Assembly (NCBI GenBank): GCA_964019335.1
Contig: OZ025750.1
Span: 62,001-126,000 of the forward strand
From: Diplonema japonicum
Taxonomy: Eukaryota > Protista > Euglenozoa: Diplonemea
Length of the DNA stretch: 64,000 bases
Direction: 5' to 3'
Shown: positions 1,257-16,564 of the stretch, one piece after another
Numbering within the stretch: the first letter of the stretch is position 1
Layout of the letters: every line of letters begins with the position of its first letter
Notes under the pieces: model-generated
The model's database searches: none
What the model was told of the DNA's origin: nothing
Seen by the model: the letters and a program-made list of their open reading frames with translations, nothing else
Program-made: the position numbers and the translations under genes

Positions 1257-4200
1257 ATGGAGGAGGAGGGGAGGATTGTACCAGCAGGGCGCACAGCTGA
1301 AGGAAAGGCAGTTGGGGTGAGGCAGACAGGCCCGCCATGGCGGTTCTGGTACGAAGGGCGGGAGATCGCTGGTCCGGAGGGTGGGGCAGTGGAGAAGGGA
1401 AGGTACGTGGTGAAGCAGAAGGGAGGAAACCTGGAACTACTCCGGAGGGAGGTGGTGAAAGGGGAGGGATGGGCAGTGTGGATAGACGATGAGGCCCTGG
1501 GGGAGTACGAAAGGGCCCGGGTAGTGGTGCACCCCCCCTCACTCACACGCGGTGTCCCGCACCCCACTCACACCAACGGCGCTCCCCTCAACACCATCGC
1601 CGCCTTCTTCTCCTCCGGAAGACACCTCCTTGGTGGGGGTTCTTGCTGTTCTAAAACCGACCTCCCCAAACGACACCGGGGGCCGACTGTACCAGCGAAG
1701 TTCATATCGGACCATATTACTGGAGTGGTGCAAAGTGTGAAACCATCTGATAGAAAGGCCAAGGAGACCCGTCTCGTTCAGTGGTTCAAGGAGCACGAGA
1801 TGCAACTCATGTTGCAGGGCATATCACTCGGCGCGGGGTCTTTGTACAACAATTGCATCGACATGCTGCATCTCGTGGAAGAGTCGATGGTGAAGGAAGA
1901 CGAGCTCTTCTTCAGCGTTTACATCTCACAGGCGGTGGCGAAGGTCGGGCTCGCGCTTCTTCTCAACTCCGCAACTCGGTCAAAGATCGACACAAGGCTG
2001 AAAAAACTGATCAACGGTCTGCTGAAGAAGAAACCCCCAAACATGGTGTTTTACGAGCTGGAGTGGCTTCGCAAGGGCCTGGAAATCGTCAAGGAGATCG
2101 AGGATTTCGAGTGGGACACCGTGGACATCCTTATCAAATGCGTCACAAGCATCACGTCCATGAGCTTTTCAGTTGTTCTAACCGACTTGCTAAATCTAAG
2201 CAGGAAGGCCTACAGCATGGCGAAGGGCATCTCCGAGCACAACCACTACTTCGGTATCGCGGCAATCGAGCGCACGGCAGCCGTAGTGAAGAACCGATTG
2301 CTATGGTATCACCTCTTACAAGCGGATGAAAAAGCGGCGGCGAAAGCAGAGCTAAAAACGTACCTGCTAGAAGTACAAAGCGAACGTGGCAGGCTGGAGA
2401 CATGGGAGGTCGCCTTCGCGTGGGTCAAGCTCATTGCGGACATCCTCATCTTCAACCCTGCCGTCGTCACGCAAGCCAGCATCAACAAACTTCTGAAAGA
2501 TGAGAACATGGACGGGCATGACGTCACGTTAGAAGGCTTAAGGGCAAAAGGTTGGCTTGTGGAACACACCTCCGACGGTGGGAAGCACAACGTCTCAGTA
2601 CTTACAAGCTCCTTTTCAGGCCACTGGAGATCGGGTTCGACTGATGATATCACAAATATGTTGGACAAGCACCCAAGACAGCCAATCCCGAACGATTTGC
2701 AGGAGCTTCTCGTGACGGGGTCAGAAGGGTTCCACGGGCTGGCACACTTCGCGAAGATGGGGATATCGACGCCTCGGAGTCTTGTGGTCGTCCTCGAGGA
2801 AGCGAACACCCTGCTCAAGGGGAAGAAACCTGTCAATGAGATGCAACAGGGTCTGAAAGGGCTGCTCAACAACACGCTGAACGGTGCGGCGAACTTCGCA
2901 GGTCTATTCGTTGAGAATAAAGCGAACATCTGGCGTGTCCGGGACAGGGCGGTGGTGGCCTGCATCGACGTCCTCTCCAGGAACAACGTGAGCGCCCCGT
3001 GTGCAAGAGAGCTGCAGGCGACCTTGACGAACTGCGAGGTGTTCGAGCAGAACAGCGACGTTCGTCGAACCCTCAAGAACCCCGGTGTGTACAAGGAAAC
3101 AGCAGCATTTTTAAAGAAATCCTGGAAGACCCAGGAGGAGGAGGTCCAAGAGAGCATCAAGACCACGATGGACAGACTCGAGGAGCTGCAGCATTCGATG
3201 CTCAACTGCACCTTACCCAACATAACCAAAGAGCTGCGTGCAGTTATGAACGAGGTCAACAACGAGCTCGACCATCAGGTGAAGAGCCTCCAAGGAATGC
3301 AAGAAAAGCTCGGGGTGACACTTGACTTCCTAATGGGGATACAACGCAGGCAGCTCTCGATGGAGAAGAACCTAAACGACTTGTTGCGACACCTCGGCGC
3401 GGATGAGTCGATCCCCGACATCTGCAAGGAGCGAATGAAGGAAGTAAGGTTACAGAAGCAGCCCGCCGTCTACTTAACACCTTATGGCGATGCAGTCGAA
3501 GAAACACTGACAGCTGCTTCAACCGAATCCCCACCCCGAACACCTGTTCCTTGCGATAACGTAGAGCTCGAGCTTCTGGAACACGCTTGGGACATGATAG
3601 ACGACCCAACCAAGAACACCCTCCTCATCACAGGACGATCGGGAGGCGGGAAGTCAACATTCATGAAGAAGCTCCACACCGATCTGTGGAAGCACTACTG
3701 GGGGTCTCAAGAGAAAAGCAGCGTCTTCACGATACCACTCTTCTGCTCGCTCCCGGAGTTGCGCGATCCACGCTCTGGCCTCGTTGAAGAAGCCTTCGCA
3801 AAGTGCGGTGTTCAAGGACCTCTCCTCCTGCAACGCATAAAAACAGAATGCCGTGCAGGGAAGTGCCGCCTGATCTTCATCCTCGACTCGTACAACGAGA
3901 TGTGCGCCGACTACCGCTACACCAACCTGTACCAGTCCAACAACCTTAGAAAGTGGGGAGAGAAGCAATTGGAAGACGCGCCAGTAAACGCTCCTTACCC
4001 CAAGATCGTCATCACCTGTCGCCAAGAGTTCGTGGACTCCAACAGAAACTACAGGAAGTATTTCCACCCGATTCAAGAAGGGCTGAACTTCAAGGAGGCT
4101 CTCTCCGTGGTAAGGATACGCGACTTCAGAAAGCGGACGTGCGAGTACCTGAACAGGGACTATGAGGACCAGATAAAAAGGCTCAGCAGGGAGTGCGACG

Positions 4201-7200
4201 TGTCAGAAGAGTACGTAGACAGCATGACAATGAAGGCAGAGACGGTTGTTGGGGTACAAGCGGAAGGGCAGACTGAGCAGCCGTACTCATCGCTCATCGA
4301 GCAACTGAAGAAGGATCATGACCATGTCGGTGAGTTGACTACCGATGACATAAACGAGCTGACATCAGTCCCAAGCGAGAGGAAATTCCTGTCAGAACTG
4401 CAGAACATATGGTCACCCCTGAAACTGTTCCGCGCAGCGGCGAACAGTGTTGGGCAGCTTCTATCAACACCCTTCATGCTGTCCATCTTGGTGAAGGTGA
4501 TCCCTGTCATGTTCTCTGATGAAACGAACCCGTCCAGGTCCAAGGCACTCCTGAAGTACGACACGTACCACACATTCGTGAACCTGCTGTTGGACAAGAG
4601 CCTTCCAAATCTCGTCGCAAAGCACACCACAGTCCCGGAGGGCAGATTGAGGTTGGACTTCGAGAACTACTGCAAAGGCTTGGCAAGGCTGATGACCCTT
4701 GAAAACCAAGTCCGTGTTCATTACGAGAGCTCCGGGGAGCTGTTTCAGCAACCGGCTACAAAATACACCGAGTACTTCTCATCTGACAACACGCTTCTGA
4801 AGGACATCAGAGAAGGGGCGCCACTGCAGACGGAGCAAGCAGGGGTAGGCGGGAGGTACTACGTTTTCATACACCAATCGATACAAGAGTTCTTCGTGGC
4901 GCAGCTAGTCTACGACGCTGTGATGCGGTTCCCGATGCTGGAGAACCTCTCTCTAGTAAAAGGCTTTGTGTCGTACTTCTTAGGCTGCGATTCGGTCACA
5001 ACACATGACCAGCTGAAGGCTATCCTTCCAAAGAGGAAGACGCACTTCTTCAACACATTCGAAAGCATCGATGGGGTACCAGAAACACAATCGCAAATCA
5101 TGGCAGCGCTCGAGGCGGACTGGTCGTACGTGAACACAGCACTGGTCGTCAACGACACTGCGGTGATGTCGCAGTTCCTCACGCCAAAGGTCCGAGCTGA
5201 CAAGAAATTTCAACGAGCACTCCTGTCACTGGTGGAACTCTCGAAGCTCCCTTACGCACAGGTCCCCGCCTCAATGGCAATCAGCATTCTAAACTCAGCG
5301 GTTAGCTTCTCAGGTATGGATCTGAGCGGTATCAGGGTTCCTAAGGCGGAACTGTCCAGTGCTGTGTTCCACGAGACGGACCTCTCCGGGGCGGATCTGT
5401 GCGGTTCGGATCTTTCCGGCTCGTACTTTCACAAAACGCGTTTGGACGGTGCTGACATGAAGGACGTGGACTTCAAACAAGAACCCGACATCATGCACAG
5501 GGGGGTCCACGCCATCGCGACGAAGCCCAAGGCCAACCTGTGGGCTACAGTGTCTCACAACACCATCAAGGTGGGCAAGCACTCAATCCCGTTCCTCGAG
5601 GGAAAGCCGCCTGACTTCCGCGTGGCATTCGAATGCAAATTCCACGGCGACACCTTACGCGTCGCCTGCAGAGATGGCATCTATGACGTGACGATGGAAG
5701 ACGGGAAACTGAGAAAAGAGAAAACCGCCAACCAACTCAACTTCTGCACGAACAAAGGCCGCATCACCGCTTTAAAATTCTCGAACGACGGCAGCACGCT
5801 AATCGCAGGCAGTAGTAAAGACGGTATCCAGATAATCGACGCAAATGGTGTTCAAAAATTGTTGGACGCGCCTCTTAATGGGGATAATGCGTCTGCCCTT
5901 GCAGTACGGAGTACCCATGGGGTTGCTACACATGTTGCCATGATGCTGGGCAGTAACGGTGAGAGGAAGACGTCCTTCGGAAAATGCGGCGTGGCAAATG
6001 GTAAACTACTGTACACCGAATCTCACTCGACAAAGCCTCACCAAGCCCTCGAATACAGCCCCAACGGGAGGTACCTCGCAATGGGCGGGGACCATCCGAA
6101 GCTTATCGACCTCGACACCAATTCGGAGAAATGGATGTCAGATGTGTTCAAAGAAAAGGTCCATATAACAGATGTGGACTTCTCTCCAAACGGCCAGGTC
6201 CTCGCAATGGGCAGCAGAACCGACGTATGCACGTGGTCCGTTCAAACTGGAATGCAACTACGCCAGTTCAACGTGTTGCTCCGCCTTTACAGCATGGGCC
6301 TTTCCGATTCACAACTGTGCATTTCTTCCGGATCGCACACAAACGAAACGGTAAAAATGTGGGATATCAAAGAGGAGGATAACGCGGCTAAGCTTGCAAA
6401 GCACGCTGAAAACCCTAAAGCGTGTCTCATAACACCTGGTGAGAGGCACTTGCTGACGTCCGTCGGCACCGACAAAGTCATTCGATGGGATTTGGAAACA
6501 GGCGAGATGCTAGACTCAACACATAATCACGTCGATGATTACTTCTCGGGGAAGAAGGTTCACTTGCTCCGCGATATTCTCAAGGGCGTTCAGGCCGCCG
6601 AGCGAGGACAAGCCCTCGCTTTACAAGACAGACCAGCCGACTTAATCTCTCCGGATCTACGCCACGCCTTCATCGGGGTCTCGACAACCGAAAAACCAAC
6701 GATCGTCCGCCTCACCGGACATGAGGATCCTGGGATCAACCGCCGCGTCTCATGCAACATCAGAAACAGATGCTTCTCAGAAGATGGTGTTAAATACGCG
6801 TACAGATTTAGAAACAGTATATTTGTTGGTGATGTCGGTGAACTTATTGAACGTGGTGATGCGTTACGCTCTTTCGGGGAAAGCGGCGAGGTGACAGAAC
6901 GACAGGTGGAGGGAATTGTAGTGCACAACCCGGACAATGAACGCGAGATTGAAACCGGGATGACTGGGATCAAGCATTTCTGTTTTTCGAAAGACGGTTC
7001 ACGGATCGCCGTTGGCTCCACGGATTCTATGCTGCGGACCAGTATTCTCATTTACGATTCATCGACAGCCGGTCTCGTGGCGCAATTGACAGTTAACGAT
7101 GTCATGAAGGAGAGGATGTCGTTCACAAAAAGCTTTCTTCTTGTGCATTGCAAGAGTAATACTTTTTTGTGGAAGTGGAGCGGGGTGAAATGGCTGCTCC

Positions 7201-7580
7201 ATAGAAGGATCTCAGCGTCTCCCTTGGATTTTAATGCTGACATCGAAGGCGTCAAGAACCTCTCACAGCATAACCTAGACATCCTTCAACAAAAGAACGA
7301 TGTTGGCAGCATGATTCAAAAGATTGTCGTGGGCAAGACGGGCGATACCTTTTGCGACGTCACCATCGATGCACGGAGAACTGGTACTGCATGCTGGAGG
7401 GTGATCACCGCCACAACCGATTTAAATGATAATCTTGCAGCGGGAAGCGTCGACGTTTCAGGAGGTGCATCAACAAGCTTCACTGCACAATGGGACGAGA
7501 AGCACGAGGAGAGCTTGTTGGTCATCAAGGTGAAGGATGAGACCGGTTTCTGTGAAGAGCATGAGATTTCACTTAAATAA
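1257..7580 (+). CDS. NLR-like STAND protein (2107 aa): LLGG-ending leader, helical/ARM-like region, coiled coil, NACHT NTPase, pentapeptide repeats, WD40 propeller, C-terminal beta-rich extension
   Basis: Intact long ORF. Walker A GRSGGGKST (3633-3659), Walker B-like LIFILDSYNE (3870-3899), sensor VITCR, TPFML, FIHQSIQEFF winged-helix motif, pentapeptide repeats DLSGADLCGSDLSGS (~5310-5475), WD-type repeats (FSPNGQVLA..., VKMWD, VIRWD), and the closing motif NLSQHNLDILQQK. Confidence 0.92.
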   Translation: MEEEGRIVPAGRTAEGKAVGVRQTGPPWRFWYEGREIAGPEGGAVEKGRYVVKQKGGNLELLRREVVKGEGWAVWIDDEALGEYERARVVVHPPSLTRGVPHPTHTNGAPLNTIAAFFSSGRHLLGGGSCCSKTDLPKRHRGPTVPAKFISDHITGVVQSVKPSDRKAKETRLVQWFKEHEMQLMLQGISLGAGSLYNNCIDMLHLVEESMVKEDELFFSVYISQAVAKVGLALLLNSATRSKIDTRLKKLINGLLKKKPPNMVFYELEWLRKGLEIVKEIEDFEWDTVDILIKCVTSITSMSFSVVLTDLLNLSRKAYSMAKGISEHNHYFGIAAIERTAAVVKNRLLWYHLLQADEKAAAKAELKTYLLEVQSERGRLETWEVAFAWVKLIADILIFNPAVVTQASINKLLKDENMDGHDVTLEGLRAKGWLVEHTSDGGKHNVSVLTSSFSGHWRSGSTDDITNMLDKHPRQPIPNDLQELLVTGSEGFHGLAHFAKMGISTPRSLVVVLEEANTLLKGKKPVNEMQQGLKGLLNNTLNGAANFAGLFVENKANIWRVRDRAVVACIDVLSRNNVSAPCARELQATLTNCEVFEQNSDVRRTLKNPGVYKETAAFLKKSWKTQEEEVQESIKTTMDRLEELQHSMLNCTLPNITKELRAVMNEVNNELDHQVKSLQGMQEKLGVTLDFLMGIQRRQLSMEKNLNDLLRHLGADESIPDICKERMKEVRLQKQPAVYLTPYGDAVEETLTAASTESPPRTPVPCDNVELELLEHAWDMIDDPTKNTLLITGRSGGGKSTFMKKLHTDLWKHYWGSQEKSSVFTIPLFCSLPELRDPRSGLVEEAFAKCGVQGPLLLQRIKTECRAGKCRLIFILDSYNEMCADYRYTNLYQSNNLRKWGEKQLEDAPVNAPYPKIVITCRQEFVDSNRNYRKYFHPIQEGLNFKEALSVVRIRDFRKRTCEYLNRDYEDQIKRLSRECDVSEEYVDSMTMKAETVVGVQAEGQTEQPYSSLIEQLKKDHDHVGELTTDDINELTSVPSERKFLSELQNIWSPLKLFRAAANSVGQLLSTPFMLSILVKVIPVMFSDETNPSRSKALLKYDTYHTFVNLLLDKSLPNLVAKHTTVPEGRLRLDFENYCKGLARLMTLENQVRVHYESSGELFQQPATKYTEYFSSDNTLLKDIREGAPLQTEQAGVGGRYYVFIHQSIQEFFVAQLVYDAVMRFPMLENLSLVKGFVSYFLGCDSVTTHDQLKAILPKRKTHFFNTFESIDGVPETQSQIMAALEADWSYVNTALVVNDTAVMSQFLTPKVRADKKFQRALLSLVELSKLPYAQVPASMAISILNSAVSFSGMDLSGIRVPKAELSSAVFHETDLSGADLCGSDLSGSYFHKTRLDGADMKDVDFKQEPDIMHRGVHAIATKPKANLWATVSHNTIKVGKHSIPFLEGKPPDFRVAFECKFHGDTLRVACRDGIYDVTMEDGKLRKEKTANQLNFCTNKGRITALKFSNDGSTLIAGSSKDGIQIIDANGVQKLLDAPLNGDNASALAVRSTHGVATHVAMMLGSNGERKTSFGKCGVANGKLLYTESHSTKPHQALEYSPNGRYLAMGGDHPKLIDLDTNSEKWMSDVFKEKVHITDVDFSPNGQVLAMGSRTDVCTWSVQTGMQLRQFNVLLRLYSMGLSDSQLCISSGSHTNETVKMWDIKEEDNAAKLAKHAENPKACLITPGERHLLTSVGTDKVIRWDLETGEMLDSTHNHVDDYFSGKKVHLLRDILKGVQAAERGQALALQDRPADLISPDLRHAFIGVSTTEKPTIVRLTGHEDPGINRRVSCNIRNRCFSEDGVKYAYRFRNSIFVGDVGELIERGDALRSFGESGEVTERQVEGIVVHNPDNEREIETGMTGIKHFCFSKDGSRIAVGSTDSMLRTSILIYDSSTAGLVAQLTVNDVMKERMSFTKSFLLVHCKSNTFLWKWSGVKWLLHRRISASPLDFNADIEGVKNLSQHNLDILQQKNDVGSMIQKIVVGKTGDTFCDVTIDARRTGTACWRVITATTDLNDNLAAGSVDVSGGASTSFTAQWDEKHEESLLVIKVKDETGFCEEHEISLK

Positions 7581-9022: not shown

Positions 9023-9118
9023 CGCGCAACAAAAGAGAAAATCGCTCACACAAAAAAAAAACAGGCTGGGAAAAAAAGAAAAAAGAAAAAAAAAAACTGA
9101 AAAGAAAAACGAAAGGAG

Positions 9119-12100
9119 ATGGAGGAGGAGGGGAGGATTGTACCAGCAGGGCGCACAGCTGAAGGAAAGGCAGTTGGGGTGAGGCAGACAGGCCCGCCAT
9201 GGCGGTTCTGGTACGAAGGGCGGGAGATCGCTGGTCCGGAGGGTGGGGCAGTGGAGAAGGGAAGGTACGTGGTGAAGCAGAAGGGAGGAAACCTGGAACT
9301 ACTCCGGAGGGAGGTGGTGAAAGGGGAGGGATGGGCAGTGTGGATAGACGATGAGGCCCTGGGGGAGTACGAAAGGGCCCGGGTAGTGGTGCACCCCCCC
9401 TCACTCACACGCGGTGTCCCGCACCCCACTCACACCAACGGCGCTCCCCTCAACACCATCGCCGCCTTCTTCTCCTCCGGAAGACACCTCCTTGGTGGGG
9501 GCAACCTCCTTTCTTGTCCCTGTTCCACGAAGATCGACCCCACCACCTCAACCACTGATGCTACCGATGTGAACTTTAACGCCTTCCTCCCCTCGGCCTC
9601 CTTGCACAGAAAGGTCATTACCATCATCGAAGCAGATGAGGACCACGAAGACACGGATGCCAAGAAGGTACAGCTCGTTCAGTGGTTCAAGGAAAACGAA
9701 GCCAGGTTCGCACTGGGGACAAGGCTCTCCGACGACAGCGCGAAGCAGCTGTGCGAGAGCATCAAGATGATGCTGCAGCTGCTTGCAGAGGCCGTTGAGA
9801 GGGAAGACGAGCTCTTCTTCAGCATTTACATTTCGCAGGCGGTGGCGAAGGTCGGGCTCGTGCTCCTCTTGTACAAGCGTAAGGCAGCTGGGTCCGACAA
9901 AGAGCTGAAGCGCGCTTGCAACGATCTGGCGAACGAGCTGCGAGGGGACAGCACCAAGAACATGGTGTTCTACGAGCTGGAGTGGCTTCGCAAAGGGCTG
10001 GCCGTAACAGAGGAACAGTTCACCATGTCACGAGCCGACATCCTCGTCACGTGCGTCAAAAGCATTGCGAGTGCCTCTCCCGCACCTGTCATCGAAGAGT
10101 TACTGGGCCTAGGCCGGCAGGCTTTCACAGTTCAAAAATCCATTTCAGAGCACAACCACTACTTTGGGATTGCGGCGATCGAGCGCACGACGGCAGTTGT
10201 GAAGACCTGGCTGCTAGGAAGGTACCACCTGGCAGGGGAAGCAGAAAAGAAAGAAGCAGTGGCGAAACTGAGGGAGCAGCTGTTCGAGATGCAGAGCGAG
10301 CGGGCCAACCTGAGGAAATGGGAGGTCGCCTTCGCGTGGGTGAAACTCATGGCGGACATCCTCACCTTCCGCCCCGCCATCGTGACAGAGGACAGCATCA
10401 AAAGTCTTGCAGCCCGCGACAAAAGCAAAGCACTGGACAGAAGCGGGCTCACATTGGACAGGCTGAGGGAACAAGGGTGGGTGGCGGCGCTTACCTTTGA
10501 AACAGGGGTGACTGTGTACGTGCTATCGGAGTCCCTTCCCGGTGTTTGGAGAGCAGACCCGTGCTTGACAGGTCACGTCACGAAGCAGCTTCGCACGCTC
10601 CCAAGGCTTGCTGTCCCCCAGCACCTTCAGGAGCTTCTCGTGAAGGAAGAATCGGCGTTCGGTGAGGACGAGGGACAGAAGAAGAAGTTCCACGGTCTGG
10701 TTCACTTTGCAAAGATGGGGATGTCGACACCGCAGGGTCTGATGAGGGTGCTCGAGGAGGCGGGGAAATGGCTTGAGGAACGAAGGCCTGTCGGCGAATC
10801 TGAGGAGGGTCTGCAAGGCTTGTACAACAAGGGATTGAACGGTGCAGCGGACTATGCACAGCTGTTCCTCGAGAACGAGAAGGACATCTGGCGACTTCGG
10901 GACAGGGCGGTGGTGGCCTGCTGTGAGGTTATTGGCAGTGTTGGGAAGGAACAATGCAAAGGGCAGTGGACACAAGAACTGCAAGCAACACTGACAACAT
11001 GCAAGGTGTTCGAGCAGAACAGCAACGTACGCAGAAGCCTCGGAAGCCCCGATGTGTACAAACGAACAGCAGCCTTCTTAAAAACATCCTGGAAGACCCA
11101 AGAGGAGGAGGTCCTGGAGAGCATCAGAACCACGATGGACAGACTCGAGGAGCTGCAGCAAAAGCTTCTGTACTGCGAGCCAACAACGAGGGGGAAACTG
11201 GAGGATGTGATGAAGAGTGTTCACAGAGACCTGGGCTTCCAGGTGAGAAGCCTCGTGGGGAAGGCGGAGAAGCTCGATATAGGGCTTGAGTTCCTGTTGG
11301 ACATGCAGCAGAGGCAGTACGCGATGGAGAGAGACCTGAAAGAGCTGAAGGGCGACATGAAGAAGCTGATGATTCACTTCGAGATGGACGCCTCAATCCC
11401 CGACATCTGCAAGGAGCGCATGACAGAGGTGGTGACGCATATGAAGTGCGGTGAAAGTGTGTACATAGCACTGTACGGCGATGAGGTGGAAGTTGACCAG
11501 GTTATCGAGAACAAGTTGTCGTCCGACTATTTAGAACACGAGGGGTCCATCAGCCCTGTGACGGCGTTCATCGGGCCTCCACCCATGACGCTCATACCTG
11601 TGTACAATAACGCAAACAGCCAGTTCGCAGCTGTTGGGGTTGGCCTTGGTCTCGATGCCGCCGCGCTGCGCAAGCGGGTTGTAGACCAGATGGTCGAGAG
11701 GTTATGCTACAAGGAAGCCTTTTGGAAGGACGAAACTAAAGAAGCGACCAATGAAGCTTGGGAGGAATACGTCGAAAACATGCGGAAGGAGACTACCCGC
11801 GGCGATACCCTGACCCTCAGGGCGTGCGCTGAGGTGCTCCGCACAATCATCTGGGTACTTGACGCTGCGAACCAGACCTTCACAAGGGCATGGGCTCCTG
11901 AGGGAGTGCACCATGTCACAGTCGTCGCATTCAGCCCTCCGAAGTACAACGGTGTGTCCGCCACAGAGAGCCTGCTCTCGTTGCTGCGAACTAGCAAGTA
12001 CGCGTCGATACAACGAAGCGAGAATGTCGGAGAAGGGGACAACGACACCTTCCTCCCCTCCAGCCCCTGTCTTTCTTCTCCCGGTCAGACCCCCGAGCTG

Positions 12101-15100
12101 ATGTGCCACGTGCAGACCATGCTCGCTGACGCCACCAAAAACACCCTCCTTATCACAGGAAAGTCCGGAAGTGGCAAATCCACATTCATGAAGAGACTCC
12201 ATGTCGCCTTGTGGGAAGAGTACTGGGGAGTCCTTCGAGGCGGCGAAGGTGTATTTACAATCCCTGTGTTCTGCTCGCTCCCTGAGCTGCGTGACCCATG
12301 CTCGAGCCTTGTTGAGGAAGCCTTCGCAAAGTGGGGTGTTCAAGGACCTCTCCTCCGCCGGATACGGAAAGACTGCCGTGCAGGGAAGTGCCGCCTGATC
12401 TTCATCCTCGACTCGTACAACGAGATGAGCGCCGACCACCAGTACACCAACCTGTACCAGTCCAACAACCTTAGAAAGTGGGGAGAGAAGCAATTGGATG
12501 ACAAACCTGGCAACGCCCCCTTCCCCAAGGTCATCGTCACCTCGCGTTATGAGCACCTCGGGTCTCACAGCCACTACCGGAGCTTCTTTTATCCCGTGCA
12601 GGAGCACACAAGGGTGGATTTCAAGGACGCTTTCTGTGAAGTGAGGATACGGGACTTCAGAAAGCGGACGTGCGAGTACCTGAACAGGGACTATGAGGAC
12701 CAGATGGAGAAGCTTCGCTTGAAACATGGGGTGTCGGTGGAGTACGTGAATGAGCTGGTGAAGATGTCCAAGGAAACAGCCGTCGTTGTTCAGACAGAAG
12801 AGCAGACTGAGAAGCCCTATACATCGCCCGTCGAGGAACTGAAGAAGAAGCTTGTTGCGTCCTCACCTACGTACGACAGCCACGACCACGAAAACAAGTG
12901 TACAATTGACGATATAAACAAGTTGACATCGGTCTCTGGTGAGAGGAGGTTCCTGTCAGAACTGCAGAACATATGGTCGCCCCTGAAACTGTTCCGAGCA
13001 GCGGCGAACAGTGTTGGGCAGCTTCGATCGACACCGTTCATGCTGTCCATCTTGGTGAAGGTGATCCCCATCATGTTCTCTGAGGACAACGACGAGGGGT
13101 ACATGTGTGAGAAGTTCCTTCGAATGATGCCAGAGGGTGTTGGCGAGCAGCTCCTTCCCCTTGCGAAACACTATGAGTTCGACCCATCGCACGCCGCCAA
13201 GCTCCTCGTAGGTCTCGACGACAAAACCAAGCACACCCTATCCCTCGAGGAGACGACACGCCTTGCGCTTCATACCTGCAAGCTCCCCAAAGCTATCCTG
13301 AAGTACGACACGTACCACACATTCGTGAACCAGTTGTTCGACAAGAGCCTTCCAAAGCTCAGCGCAAAGCACAGCTCCATTCACGTCGAAGACCTCAGGT
13401 CGGACCTCCAGAACTTCTGTAAAACCTTCGCAAGGCAGATGACGTTAAACAACAAGGTGCGTGTTCACTACGCCAGCTCAGGTAGGGAGTTCCGATCACG
13501 GTCGTGTTGGGATGAGCACTTTTCATCAGACAGCACGCTTCTGAAGGACATCAGAGATGGAGCACCACTGCAGACGGAGCAGGCAGGAGTAGGCGGGAGG
13601 TACTACGCCTTTATTCATAAGTCTATACAAGAGTCGTTCGTAGCGCAGCTTATCTACGACTCTATAATGCGGTTCCCGATGCTGGAAAACCTCCCTGTGG
13701 TGAAAGGGTTTGTGTCTTACTTTCTGAACTGCCGTTCGGTTGCTGACTGGAACCAGCTGAAGACGGTGCTACCCGGCATGCGAATGCACTTCGTGAACAC
13801 ATGTGCCAGCAAGTTCCACATTGATAGGAACGTCGTCCCCGCCACATTGACGCAGATCGTCGATGTAGTGGAGGCGGACTGGTCACGTTTGAACACAGCA
13901 CTCGTCATCAACGATAAGGCGGTGATGTCGCAGTTCCTCACGCCAAAGGTCCGAGCTGACAAGAAATTTCAACGAGCACTCCTGTCACTGGTGGAACTCT
14001 CGAAGCTCCCTTACGCACAGGTCCCCGCCTCAATGGCAATCAGCATTCTAAACTCAGCGGTTAGCTTCTCAGGTATGGATCTGAGCGGTATCAGGGTTCC
14101 TAAGGCGGAACTGTCCAGTGCTGTGTTCCACGAGACGGACCTCTCCGGGGCGGATCTGTGCGGTGCAAACTTGTCAAAGGCGTACTTTCACAAAACGCGT
14201 TTGGACGGTGCTGACATGAAGGACGTGGACTTCAAACAGGAGCCCGACATCACGCACAGGGGGGTGAGGAGCATCGCGACCACCACTAAACAGGGAGAAG
14301 AACTGTGGGCCACGGTGTCTTGGGACGCAATCAGAGTAGGAAGGTACGCTGCTCTGAACTTCGATGGCGGCACAACACTGTGGGACCCTATCGGCTGCAA
14401 GTTCCATGGTGACATACTGCGAGTGGCAGCCACAACAGGCATTTACGACGTGGAGATGAACAACGAAACGCTGAACATCAAGAAGTCGTCCCACCAGCTG
14501 AAGTTCAACTCGAATGAGACCATCAAAATGCTGACGTTTTCAAACGACGGCAGCACGCTGATCGCCGGGACGAACAAGGGCAACATCCAGGTCATCGATG
14601 CCAACGGTGTCCACCCTCTGTACAACGCCCCTTTGAGAGAAAGGATATGGAGCCTCGCGATCCTCAGCGAACAAGAGTCGGGCAATTCAATCCAAACTGC
14701 CATTGGATACAAGGAAGAGGCGTACCACGCTCCGTGCGATTCAGATGAAACTGGGCTCCAGTACACACATGGGAGACCCGACGGAAATCCAATTCCAATC
14801 ACAGAATCTTGTTTGCAATACGACCCGCATGGAAGGTACCTTGCAGTGGTCGGTGGGAACAGGAGCGGGCACAAGAACATGCTGCTGGAGTGCAGGATAA
14901 TCGACATAAGAAAAGGAGGGGTAAAGACGGTGATACGGGGGCAGGAAAAGATGTCACAAACAGTACAGTTTTCACCAGACGGACAGGTCCTCGCAATCGG
15001 CGTTTATTCCGGAATCCAAACATGGTCTGTAAGCACCGGTATTGAGCTTAGAACATTCGAGCTCCCCATGGCGGTAACAGTTTGCTTCTCTGATGCGAGA

Positions 15101-16564
15101 ATGGCAGCGGCTTCCGTTTCAGATAACGCGGTGAAAATGTGGAACATACAAGACTCGGAGAAGATCAGAGGATTAGCCGGGCATACCGGTGGGATCGGCG
15201 AGGCGATCATCACACCAGACGGTCAGTACATCGTGACCTCCGGCCTTGTCGATCAAAAGATAAAAAAATGGGATTTAGAAACCGGCGAGCTGCTTGTGTC
15301 ATCAACTCCTTGCAACTCCGCTTTAACATGCGTGTCGCTATCGGGAGCTGCGAACGTACATTGGCAAGCTGAAGGGGTGGCGTGGTGTGCGGATTTAATA
15401 TGCCCAGATTTTCATTACAAGAGGTACCACACGCTGGTGGCGAGAGAAGGCGATGTTTTGCTGTCTGGGAAGAAACAAATGCATGTTTTGACGGTCCGGT
15501 CGCGGAGCTCTAAAATGCCTCCTGCGATCACACTGTCGCCGGACTGCCGGCACGCAATTGTTTACGATGTCAAAACAAACCTGCAGACAATATTGAAACT
15601 CGCTGACATCGACGAAAGCGTCGGCCGCCCGACATCCTCCTGCTCCGGGCATGGATTAGCTTGCTTCTCCAGCGACGGTTCTCAATTCGCGTTTATAGGA
15701 AAACGGCAGCAACCAAACGTCATCAAAATCGGCTCCGTGTCCGATCTTGTTTCGAAGGATATGAAACAAACCCACGGAATGTGGAGCCTTGTCTTGAGAA
15801 CATCAGACCGACGAGGGAGAGTGTCTGAATGTTCCATCGACTACGAGGAGGTTGTTCTGAAGGTGAAGCCTCTCGAGATTCACGGCGCACCGCCAATGTG
15901 TTTTTCTCAAGACGGCCGTTACATCGCGTACAGCCCGAAGACATCGGGTACCGGGTGCAGGCAGAGCCAGATTTTTATCGACGTTGCTGGTAAGGTGTCT
16001 AAAAAGGTTCGAAAAGGTGTGCCTTTGCACACCATAAATGTGTACCGCGGAACTGTCAGCCAGATATCTTTCAAAGGCGATTATCTTCTCGCGGTCTGCC
16101 GGCAAAGTTCTATGTTGTGGAAACGAAGCATACTTGGCGAAAGCGCTCGCTTGCGACGCGACACGCACGACCTAGCGCTTGTTCATCAGAACGGAAAGAG
16201 AGTTTGCACGTGGTTGGTTCATAGAGAGTTTTCCAAGGTTGAGACACCGTTAGAGTGTATTGATTGCGGTGTTGACACTACTCTGAATCTGTCTGGGAAC
16301 AACAGGGAGATACTCAGGCAGCGGCAGGGCGGGGCGAGCATACCGGGACTGTCTATCGTCCCGCCAGAAATCGGGCTTGCAGCCACGATGCCGAGGGTGA
16401 GCCGGGGGCGGAGTGCCATGAGGGATAAAAAAAAGAAGAAGAATGGGATTTTCCGTGATGAGATTATACAGCAGAAGCGTGCGATGTCGTGCAACCGTTC
16501 AGAAGAGAGCCTCGCGAAGGTTACCAAGGCAACGGGCAACAAGCCGGTTTTACTCGAGGCGTGA
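9119..16564 (+). CDS. NLR-like STAND protein paralog (2481 aa): same architecture plus an inserted pseudo-OTU domain before the NACHT
   Basis: Intact ORF. First 128 aa identical to the upstream paralog. Walker A GKSGSGKST (from 12158), LIFILDSYNE, FIHKSIQESF, pentapeptide repeats, WD40 repeats (GHTGGIGEAIITPDGQYIVTSG...IKKWD), NLSGNNREILRQR. An insertion of about 200 aa lies at ~11490-12090. Confidence 0.92.
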   Translation: MEEEGRIVPAGRTAEGKAVGVRQTGPPWRFWYEGREIAGPEGGAVEKGRYVVKQKGGNLELLRREVVKGEGWAVWIDDEALGEYERARVVVHPPSLTRGVPHPTHTNGAPLNTIAAFFSSGRHLLGGGNLLSCPCSTKIDPTTSTTDATDVNFNAFLPSASLHRKVITIIEADEDHEDTDAKKVQLVQWFKENEARFALGTRLSDDSAKQLCESIKMMLQLLAEAVEREDELFFSIYISQAVAKVGLVLLLYKRKAAGSDKELKRACNDLANELRGDSTKNMVFYELEWLRKGLAVTEEQFTMSRADILVTCVKSIASASPAPVIEELLGLGRQAFTVQKSISEHNHYFGIAAIERTTAVVKTWLLGRYHLAGEAEKKEAVAKLREQLFEMQSERANLRKWEVAFAWVKLMADILTFRPAIVTEDSIKSLAARDKSKALDRSGLTLDRLREQGWVAALTFETGVTVYVLSESLPGVWRADPCLTGHVTKQLRTLPRLAVPQHLQELLVKEESAFGEDEGQKKKFHGLVHFAKMGMSTPQGLMRVLEEAGKWLEERRPVGESEEGLQGLYNKGLNGAADYAQLFLENEKDIWRLRDRAVVACCEVIGSVGKEQCKGQWTQELQATLTTCKVFEQNSNVRRSLGSPDVYKRTAAFLKTSWKTQEEEVLESIRTTMDRLEELQQKLLYCEPTTRGKLEDVMKSVHRDLGFQVRSLVGKAEKLDIGLEFLLDMQQRQYAMERDLKELKGDMKKLMIHFEMDASIPDICKERMTEVVTHMKCGESVYIALYGDEVEVDQVIENKLSSDYLEHEGSISPVTAFIGPPPMTLIPVYNNANSQFAAVGVGLGLDAAALRKRVVDQMVERLCYKEAFWKDETKEATNEAWEEYVENMRKETTRGDTLTLRACAEVLRTIIWVLDAANQTFTRAWAPEGVHHVTVVAFSPPKYNGVSATESLLSLLRTSKYASIQRSENVGEGDNDTFLPSSPCLSSPGQTPELMCHVQTMLADATKNTLLITGKSGSGKSTFMKRLHVALWEEYWGVLRGGEGVFTIPVFCSLPELRDPCSSLVEEAFAKWGVQGPLLRRIRKDCRAGKCRLIFILDSYNEMSADHQYTNLYQSNNLRKWGEKQLDDKPGNAPFPKVIVTSRYEHLGSHSHYRSFFYPVQEHTRVDFKDAFCEVRIRDFRKRTCEYLNRDYEDQMEKLRLKHGVSVEYVNELVKMSKETAVVVQTEEQTEKPYTSPVEELKKKLVASSPTYDSHDHENKCTIDDINKLTSVSGERRFLSELQNIWSPLKLFRAAANSVGQLRSTPFMLSILVKVIPIMFSEDNDEGYMCEKFLRMMPEGVGEQLLPLAKHYEFDPSHAAKLLVGLDDKTKHTLSLEETTRLALHTCKLPKAILKYDTYHTFVNQLFDKSLPKLSAKHSSIHVEDLRSDLQNFCKTFARQMTLNNKVRVHYASSGREFRSRSCWDEHFSSDSTLLKDIRDGAPLQTEQAGVGGRYYAFIHKSIQESFVAQLIYDSIMRFPMLENLPVVKGFVSYFLNCRSVADWNQLKTVLPGMRMHFVNTCASKFHIDRNVVPATLTQIVDVVEADWSRLNTALVINDKAVMSQFLTPKVRADKKFQRALLSLVELSKLPYAQVPASMAISILNSAVSFSGMDLSGIRVPKAELSSAVFHETDLSGADLCGANLSKAYFHKTRLDGADMKDVDFKQEPDITHRGVRSIATTTKQGEELWATVSWDAIRVGRYAALNFDGGTTLWDPIGCKFHGDILRVAATTGIYDVEMNNETLNIKKSSHQLKFNSNETIKMLTFSNDGSTLIAGTNKGNIQVIDANGVHPLYNAPLRERIWSLAILSEQESGNSIQTAIGYKEEAYHAPCDSDETGLQYTHGRPDGNPIPITESCLQYDPHGRYLAVVGGNRSGHKNMLLECRIIDIRKGGVKTVIRGQEKMSQTVQFSPDGQVLAIGVYSGIQTWSVSTGIELRTFELPMAVTVCFSDARMAAASVSDNAVKMWNIQDSEKIRGLAGHTGGIGEAIITPDGQYIVTSGLVDQKIKKWDLETGELLVSSTPCNSALTCVSLSGAANVHWQAEGVAWCADLICPDFHYKRYHTLVAREGDVLLSGKKQMHVLTVRSRSSKMPPAITLSPDCRHAIVYDVKTNLQTILKLADIDESVGRPTSSCSGHGLACFSSDGSQFAFIGKRQQPNVIKIGSVSDLVSKDMKQTHGMWSLVLRTSDRRGRVSECSIDYEEVVLKVKPLEIHGAPPMCFSQDGRYIAYSPKTSGTGCRQSQIFIDVAGKVSKKVRKGVPLHTINVYRGTVSQISFKGDYLLAVCRQSSMLWKRSILGESARLRRDTHDLALVHQNGKRVCTWLVHREFSKVETPLECIDCGVDTTLNLSGNNREILRQRQGGASIPGLSIVPPEIGLAATMPRVSRGRSAMRDKKKKKNGIFRDEIIQQKRAMSCNRSEESLAKVTKATGNKPVLLEA
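11585..11956 (+). other. OTU deubiquitinase-like domain with substituted catalytic residues, embedded in CDS 9119-16564
   Basis: IPVYNNANSQFAAV aligns to the OTU Cys loop xxVxGDGNCQFRAx, followed by LRKRVVDQM. WEEYVENMRKETTRGDTLTLRACAEVL aligns to YxxxMxxxGxWGDxxTLxAxA. PPKYNGV aligns to xHYNSx. The domain is absent from the paralog. Confidence 0.78.

Follow-up and report, generated by a model that had tools for sequence, protein, structure and literature searches.

We analyzed a window of 64,000 nucleotides (nt) of the Diplonema japonicum genome (assembly GCA_964019335.1, contig OZ025750.1, positions 62,001 to 126,000), in which two neighboring genes encode large NACHT proteins that start with one and the same leader of 127 amino acids (aa). 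A first-pass annotation had proposed that this leader, which ends with R-H-L-L-G-G, is a removable pro-domain and that cleavage behind it exposes a signal for lipidation. The first gene, par1 (1257-7580, forward strand), is an intronless open reading frame (ORF) of 2107 aa that comprises the leader, a helical region, a NACHT domain (aa 788-888), pentapeptide repeats and WD40 repeats. The second gene, par2 (9119-16564, forward strand), is likewise intronless and encodes a STAND (signal transduction ATPase with numerous domains) protein of 2481 aa with the leader as in par1. As annotated, aa 1-127 are identical in the two proteins; codon 128 is Gly in both, and no Met is present between Met1 and Gly128. 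The assembly consists of 62.5 megabases in 132 contigs, and a genome note is available for D. japonicum YPF1604 (PMC13598402).

Both proteins pass the Pfam cut-off for NACHT (PF05729; 28.2 bits for par1 and 33.3 bits for par2, with a cut-off of 26.7), and their Walker A motifs read GRSGGGKST in par1 and GKSGSGKST in par2. The C-terminal sensor repeats include pentapeptide repeats (PF00805, 39-42 bits) and matches to the WD40 beta-propeller. The NACHT score together with these repeats justifies the name NLR-like (nucleotide-binding, leucine-rich-repeat-like) STAND protein; the first-pass annotation had called the proteins NLR-like. A parallel to NLRP1/CARD8 had also been drawn. No FIIND (ZU5-UPA) is found among the Pfam matches listed (the best 25 of 32 and 38 families) and none on the leader, and the resemblance is conceptual only.

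Copies of the leader in the genome

Exactly four copies of the leader are present genome-wide, each at the 5' end of a NACHT-type gene. Three of them, par0, par1 and par2, are tandem copies; the fourth is diverged, bears introns and lies on a separate contig, C95. The gene par0 (L006:2229-4856; G000:C103:58229-60856) is located 5 kilobases upstream of par1, just outside the window. Its leader differs in one residue, and the junction reads LLGG-GNCCAVP. The C95 copy (L017:3253 onward) is 50% identical over the leader and 35-50% identical over the body, and its junction reads TTNGAPPHRIAAFFSRGRRLVGG-GCALSLF, with RLVGG-GCALSLF at the end. In a genome-wide search, the pattern FFSxGRxLxGGG was found in these four genes only, with 0 matches in the reversed control. 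Two remoter paralogs, on contigs C91 and C60, have neither the leader nor the Gly/Cys start.

The paralogs also differ in their overall architecture. par0 is chimeric and truncated: about 700 aa are near-identical to par1, and they are followed by proline-rich repeats (about eight tandem copies of 'GGD[IM]PPPGFEEPLAA[PT]T[AT]SA[IV]S') and then by a stop. Repeats akin to this tail, 'SSGYEEPLPAGSSEVP', occur at the start of the distant C60 paralog (L024:246-7886). The C95 paralog contains an intron of 48 nt (L017:7417-7464; G000:C95:55417-55464), which is bounded by GT...AG and includes an A-rich tract, and a second short intron is probable after '...SFSG' near L017:7900. Because the reading frame resumes in register with par1 after the 48-nt intron, the C95 gene looks intact. 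That the tandem copies are intronless where C95 has introns suggests intron loss or a retro-copied origin of the C103 cluster.

Gene conversion of the leader and hypervariability behind it

Positions 1236-1639 and 9099-9501 of the window (both on the forward strand) show 99.5% nucleotide identity over 404 nt. In par1 this block covers 21 nt of the 5' untranslated region (UTR), codons 1-127 and two bases of Gly128; in par2 it covers the end of the 5' UTR and the leader, and codons 1-127 of the two genes match codon for codon. Immediately 3' of the block, the identity between par1 and par2 falls to 45-70% (about 40-60% at third positions), in agreement with the annotated onset of divergence right after the leader. 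The 404-nt block is a gene-conversion tract, and the identity of the leader among the tandem copies is due to gene conversion and not to extreme purifying selection. A second tract of this kind is found between par1 and par2 at codons 1302-1383 and 1390-1407 (5160-5405 and about 5424-5477 of the window), with 82 and 18 identical codons, just before and within the pentapeptide-repeat region. The two paralogs are mosaics.

In par1, a hypervariable segment (1638-1781, forward strand; aa 128-175) extends from the GGG to the conserved 'LVQWFKE' at the start of the helical body. The ratio of nonsynonymous to synonymous substitution rates (dN/dS) in this segment is 0.84-0.97 when the tandem copies are compared, with dN about 1.0-1.2. 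Between par0 and par1, dS is 0.41 in aa 129-175 and 0.01 in the flanks, which are 97-100% identical. Since par0 and par1 differ strongly in aa 129-175, the segment after the GGG has been kept different while its flanks were homogenized. The intergenic region between par0 and par1 (L006:4850-6850) consists of very high-copy repeats; in the DNA runs, unitig depth there reaches about 1000 times that of the genes on either side.

A conserved junction with a candidate acylation signal

Judged by invariant alignment columns, the leader is best conserved in a linear motif that lies within the predicted disordered linker and extends to the GG. It reads T-N-G-A-P-x3-I-A-A-F-F-S-x-G-R-x-L-x-G-G-G (1572-1640 in par1, forward strand; aa 106-128), and the proposed processing site lies after Gly127. 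Behind Gly127, par1 has G-S-C-C-S-K (1638-1655, forward strand, with S-C-C-S-K at 1641-1655), which provides a candidate Gly for N-myristoylation and Cys that could be palmitoylated, and par2 has the candidate embedded acylation signal G-N-L-L-S-C-P-C-S (9500-9526, forward strand, with N-L-L-S-C-P-C-S from 9503), both as first annotated. Across the four copies, the continuations are GNCCAVPIS (par0), GSCCSKTDL (par1), GNLLSCPCS (par2) and GCALSLFTG (C95).

We compared the three possible Gly registers of the GGG with the consensus for N-myristoyltransferase (NMT), PROSITE PS00008, G-{EDRKHPFYW}-x2-[STAGCN]-{P}. The register of the third Gly, Gly128, fits in all four copies and is the only one that does so. 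Moreover, a Cys is found at most eight residues after Gly128 in each copy, at +2/+3 in par0 and par1, +5/+7 in par2 and +1 in C95. The suggestion that a GxxxS-type start and a Cys are kept in the same register therefore extends, with Ser or Ala at +4, to four of four copies, including the 50%-identical C95. Over the 485 Gly residues of these proteins, PS00008 is matched at 19%, and PS00008 with a nearby Cys at about 3%, of which the junction Gly residues account for about half. There is free variation at positions +2, +3 and +5 to +8, and the Gly and the Ser/Ala at +4 stay. A fixed Gly, a fixed Ser/Ala at +4 and a Cys nearby are what selection for a myristoylation/palmitoylation signal would be expected to leave.

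The codons before Gly128 are GGT/GGG/CTT (GTC/GGG/GGC in C95), none of them near-cognate, and non-AUG initiation at Gly128 is thereby ruled out. With neither a Met nor a near-cognate start before it, Gly128 could be exposed by proteolysis alone. Autoprocessing of the Hedgehog/intein type at G|C was also considered and ruled out, because Asn follows the Gly in two copies.

Translation and transcription of the leader

In the comparison with C95, the whole leader has a dN/dS of 0.30, its domain one of 0.35 and aa 91-128 one of 0.18 (dS 1.3-2.5; about 1.6-2.5 for the leader and aa 91-128), a constraint equal to or stronger than that on the NACHT region. A value of 0.30 indicates selection at the protein level. 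In the transcriptome of D. japonicum (EukProt EP01064), entry P0001 of 2481 aa aligns gap-free with par2 aa 1-620 at 100% identity (BLASTP, rounded). This entry is a 'complete' ORF from Trinity/TransDecoder, so leader and body of par2 lie in one uninterrupted mRNA ORF with the same start Met. The transcriptome copy has K at residue 86, unlike genomic par2 and like par0, which fits ongoing conversion or, alternatively, Trinity threading reads from identical leaders. A short intron that would excise the junction is ruled out for par2, whose transcript ORF runs collinear with the genomic sequence. Upstream of the par1 and par2 ATGs, pyrimidine tracts followed by AG dinucleotides are found within about 60 nt, the region in which a spliced-leader acceptor would be expected, and the 3' end of the euglenozoan spliced leader has >200 copies in the assembly. 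In one possible RNA run, the leader is represented by a single 163-nt contig.

These results bear on whether the leader belongs to the protein at all. The region is purine- and GC-rich with several frames open, as might be expected if the leader were 5' UTR, were spliced out or were an annotation artefact of an open frame. Such an explanation is opposed by the protein-level constraint relative to C95, by the leader being in frame with the body in four of four genes, by the start Met that the par2 transcript ORF shares with the genomic gene, and by the pyrimidine tracts and AG just 5' of the ATG, as for a spliced-leader acceptor. We regard it as largely refuted and give it hardly any credence; the leader is transcribed and translated, as the first-pass annotation had assumed.

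Predicted structure of the leader and its relatives

An AlphaFold2 run on the four-sequence leader alignment predicts, with moderate confidence, an all-beta domain in which a helix (aa 78-87) comes after seven strands (the leader beta-domain, aa 1-90; 1257-1526 in par1, forward strand). The predicted local distance difference test (pLDDT) is 63-88 over aa 1-70, and the confident fold ends at about aa 85. Residues 86-147 have pLDDT <50 and are predicted to be disordered, and a short helix is predicted at aa 111-119. The GG at aa 126-127 is therefore placed about 35 disordered residues beyond the fold. No known fold could be assigned: the best match in an exhaustive comparison with 48,161 PDB representatives had a VIA Z of 2.9, and Foldseek found none at E<=0.001. 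Similarly, Pfam was blank on aa 1-148, including the ubiquitin-like (UBL) families, a PDB profile search was not significant, and the ESM Atlas gave nothing usable. For the helical region behind the leader (aa 128-700), the AlphaFold2 model had a mean pLDDT of 52, too poor for a fold search.

Distant NACHT-WD40 matches in Mortierella and in metagenomes have unrelated N-termini and lack L-x-GGG. A scan of JGI metagenomes with the leader alignment gave a sole match, a bacterial ORF resembling 3-methyladenine glycosylase, which has only RPWRFWY in common with the leader and was rejected as a chance match.

Lipidation machinery in the genome

The repertoire of DHHC acyltransferases is large, with 38 matches above the Pfam cut-off genome-wide; a few of these matches contain internal stops. 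Diverged Arf paralogs (L030, L032, L035 and L037) start with MGASIGKLF, MGNIASLFK and MGGSISSLFK. This canonical myristoylated MGxxxS/G start argues that NMT activity exists. The Arf genes are arranged in a tandem unit of about 16 kilobases, present in at least three copies with several Arf paralogs each (G000:C25:642000-677000, L030-L037).

Possible proteolytic exposure of an acylation anchor and its alternatives

A strongly conserved motif that lies in a disordered linker, an end of this conservation exactly at the GG, and an NMT-compatible Gly/Cys start within a hypervariable stretch together lead us to favor, tentatively and at somewhat less than an even chance, the possibility that the protein is processed at the junction and that a dual-acylation anchor is thereby exposed. 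The leader would then be a family-specific pro-region, made up of the small all-beta domain and the disordered linker, and IAAFFS-x-GR-x-L-x-GG would be the recognition site of an endoprotease. A cut after Gly127 would release the beta-domain and make Gly128 the new N-terminus; Gly128 would be myristoylated post-translationally, the nearby Cys would be S-palmitoylated by DHHC enzymes, and the double acylation would tether the NACHT-WD40 protein to a membrane. In the predicted structure, the position of a conserved motif within a disordered stretch looks like the layout of a protease recognition site. The retention of TNGAP..IAAFFS.GR.L.GGG and of G-C-A-L-S in the 50%-identical C95 copy implies that the site has been conserved across a deep split. 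Furthermore, the segment after the Gly is otherwise hypervariable, so that a leftover signal without function would be expected to have eroded. We infer here the cleavage itself, the protease, both lipidations, and whether processing would be constitutive or triggered.

Several observations weigh against the exposure of such an anchor. All four sequences are from a single species and three have been homogenized, so that the sample amounts to two or three independent observations; the alignments behind the AlphaFold2 models are very shallow, and the Ser at +4 may simply have been inherited. The leader itself contains no protease domain, and its folded part keeps no Cys, His or Ser across the four copies, which makes a self-cleaving protease unlikely. 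The leader model also lacks a ubiquitin-like fold, which makes deubiquitinases (DUBs) unlikely processors. On the side of lipidation, the weakest link is NMT: PF01233 and PF02799 gave 0 candidates in the assembly, in a search with no positive-control genome behind it, and three degenerate NMT patterns gave only low-complexity false matches there. This non-detection may reflect a blind spot of the tool, an assembly gap or a very divergent NMT. As to expression, four sequencing runs behave like DNA: their depth on intergenic repeats is very high, and the leader unitig is covered about 2-3 fold. Finally, a phmmer search with aa 1-160 against 1.84 billion protein representatives returned only the transcriptome entry of the gene itself, and word-indexed searches with par2 aa 1-620, par1 aa 760-1420 and C95 aa 1-145 found no leader-bearing relatives. 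The conservation of LxGG|GxxxS/C accordingly holds among the four paralogs and could not be extended to any leader homolog among these representatives. Likewise, the ciliate NACHT-WD40 proteins with LRGG-G that the first-pass annotation had mentioned were not substantiated, as phmmer returned the gene itself only and the distant NACHT-WD40 matches have no L-x-G-G-G.

Could the same junction be explained without a cut? The leader might stay attached, with the GGG as a flexible hinge and the Cys cluster S-palmitoylated internally or serving another Cys-dependent role; IAAFFS would in that case form a short amphipathic helix, or act as a docking motif, near the membrane, and the fit to the myristoylation consensus would be inherited or coincidental. 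The retention of Cys at shifting positions is typical of S-acylation sites, and the 38 DHHC matches, the helix predicted at aa 111-119, the non-detection of an NMT gene, the lack of a protease or UBL fold in the leader and the fit of PS00008 to 19% of all Gly in these proteins are all in line with this explanation. It leaves unexplained, however, why Gly128 and the Ser/Ala at +4 are fixed in the sole NMT-compatible register while their neighbors are saturated, and why the strongest conservation stops precisely at the GG; we consider it doubtful, though the strongest of the alternatives. Another account is that the junction has no function: an ordinary N-terminal domain would be followed by the end of a conversion tract that abuts a fast-evolving linker, and Gly, Ser and Cys would be there by chance. 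Conversion is demonstrable in these genes, in a second tract (codons 1302-1383) as well, the linker after the GGG evolves with dN/dS near 1 among the tandem copies, and independent sequences are few. Nevertheless, the unconverted C95 copy (dS about 1.6) retains the motif, the GGG and a G-C-x-x-S start, and a joint pattern found at about 3% of Gly residues occurs here in four of four copies and in one register only, which makes this account unlikely.

The first-pass annotation had described the site as ubiquitin-style and had named a host DUB as a possible processor, and the leader would in that case be a ubiquitin-like fusion cut by a deubiquitinase. The L-L-G-G tail indeed resembles the L-R-G-G of ubiquitin, and in a cis variant of this idea the enzyme would be an OTU-like insert of par2 (11651-11872, forward strand; aa 845-918), which matches Pfam PF02338 with E 2.9e-6 over profile positions 25-91 of 128. 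The leader, however, has no UBL match in Pfam, its predicted topology is not a beta-grasp and it has no structural matches, and the GG follows about 35 disordered residues past the fold, where classical DUB/ULP recognition would be unlikely. The OTU match is only partial; by eye, the insert has 'NNANSQFAA' where OTU proteases have 'DGNCLFRA', with Ser in place of the catalytic Cys, phmmer found no OTU structure match for it, and it is absent from par1, par0 and C95. It does not seem credible as a cis-acting processor, and we regard a ubiquitin-like fusion as very improbable. The original interpretation is thus partly supported: an exposed acylation signal is plausible, and a ubiquitin-like mechanism is not supported.

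If proteolytic exposure of the anchor is correct, it could also be conditional. D. japonicum is host to two bacterial endosymbionts, and the proteins may be pro-protein NLR-like receptors in which the L-x-G-G|G site is cut, and the anchor unmasked, only when a specific host, pathogen or endosymbiont protease is active. We consider this an improbable variant; if true, a protease-gated switch would shed a lineage-specific beta-domain and move the receptor to a membrane, and would thus act as a lipid switch on an NLR-like protein. A real processing site would define a new linear processing motif and would offer a simple and testable handle, in the form of a single Gly, the GG before it and a small number of Cys, on the localization or activation of STAND proteins in deep-branching, ecologically dominant protists. 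Should there be no such site, the locus would remain a clear case of concerted evolution, in which one module is homogenized inside otherwise diverged tandem paralogs.

Comparison with known systems

Hidden acylation sites that proteolysis lays bare are known from bacterial effectors, caspase substrates and viral polyproteins, and acylation at the N-terminus is known from plant NLRs. To our knowledge, their combination in one NACHT-WD40 protein of a free-living euglenozoan, together with a dedicated conserved pro-domain, has not been described, and the precedent for proteolytic exposure of the anchor is mechanistic and not homologous. In the bacterial effectors AvrPphB, ORF4 and NopT, autoproteolysis exposes embedded sites of N-myristoylation and S-palmitoylation (PMC2708883). 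As in this family, the diplonemid proteins carry an internal Gly with Cys and Ser behind it (G-C-A-S-S in AvrPphB, G-C-A-L-S in C95 and G-S-C-C-S in par1), the Gly would become N-terminal only by cleavage, residues on the P side of the site are conserved, and the predicted outcome is a membrane anchor. The AvrPphB family, however, consists of bacterial papain-like proteases that cut themselves at GDK, whereas the proteins here are eukaryotic STAND NTPases, with a leader devoid of a protease signature and an L-x-G-G motif on the P side of the proposed cut. In eukaryotes, caspase cleavage exposes sites of post-translational myristoylation, as in BID, PAK2 and huntingtin (e.g. PMC9880554). Those substrates, like the diplonemid proteins as proposed here, are endogenous eukaryotic proteins in which an endoprotease unmasks a cryptic Gly that is then lipidated, with proteolysis tied to relocation on membranes. 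They differ in being cut at D|G and not at GG|G, in not being NLR-like and in having no dedicated conserved pro-domain.

Leaders of comparable position are known from other systems. In foot-and-mouth disease virus, a cut at the C-terminal end of a 150-200-aa leader removes this leader, and the Gly behind it, at the VP4 junction, becomes myristoylated. The likeness lies in an N-terminal leader directly before a myristoylatable Gly; the viral leader is, however, a papain-like protease within a polyprotein, whereas the diplonemid leader is without catalytic residues. Similarly, UBA52, RPS27A and FAU are precursors with N-terminal ubiquitin or UBL fusions that DUBs cut after the GG. They share with the diplonemid proteins an N-terminal module that ends with L-x-G-G directly before the mature protein, but the diplonemid leader lacks a beta-grasp, shows no similarity to UBL proteins in its sequence and carries its GG at the end of a long disordered linker. 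As for receptors of the same general type, the plant NLR RPS5 has an N-terminal signal of Gly and Cys for dual acylation before its helical domain, and a general statement on N-terminal acylation of plant NLRs is given in PMC4972946. The signal of the plant NLRs follows the initiator Met and is used co-translationally, whereas the candidate signal of the diplonemid proteins lies behind a leader of 127 aa.

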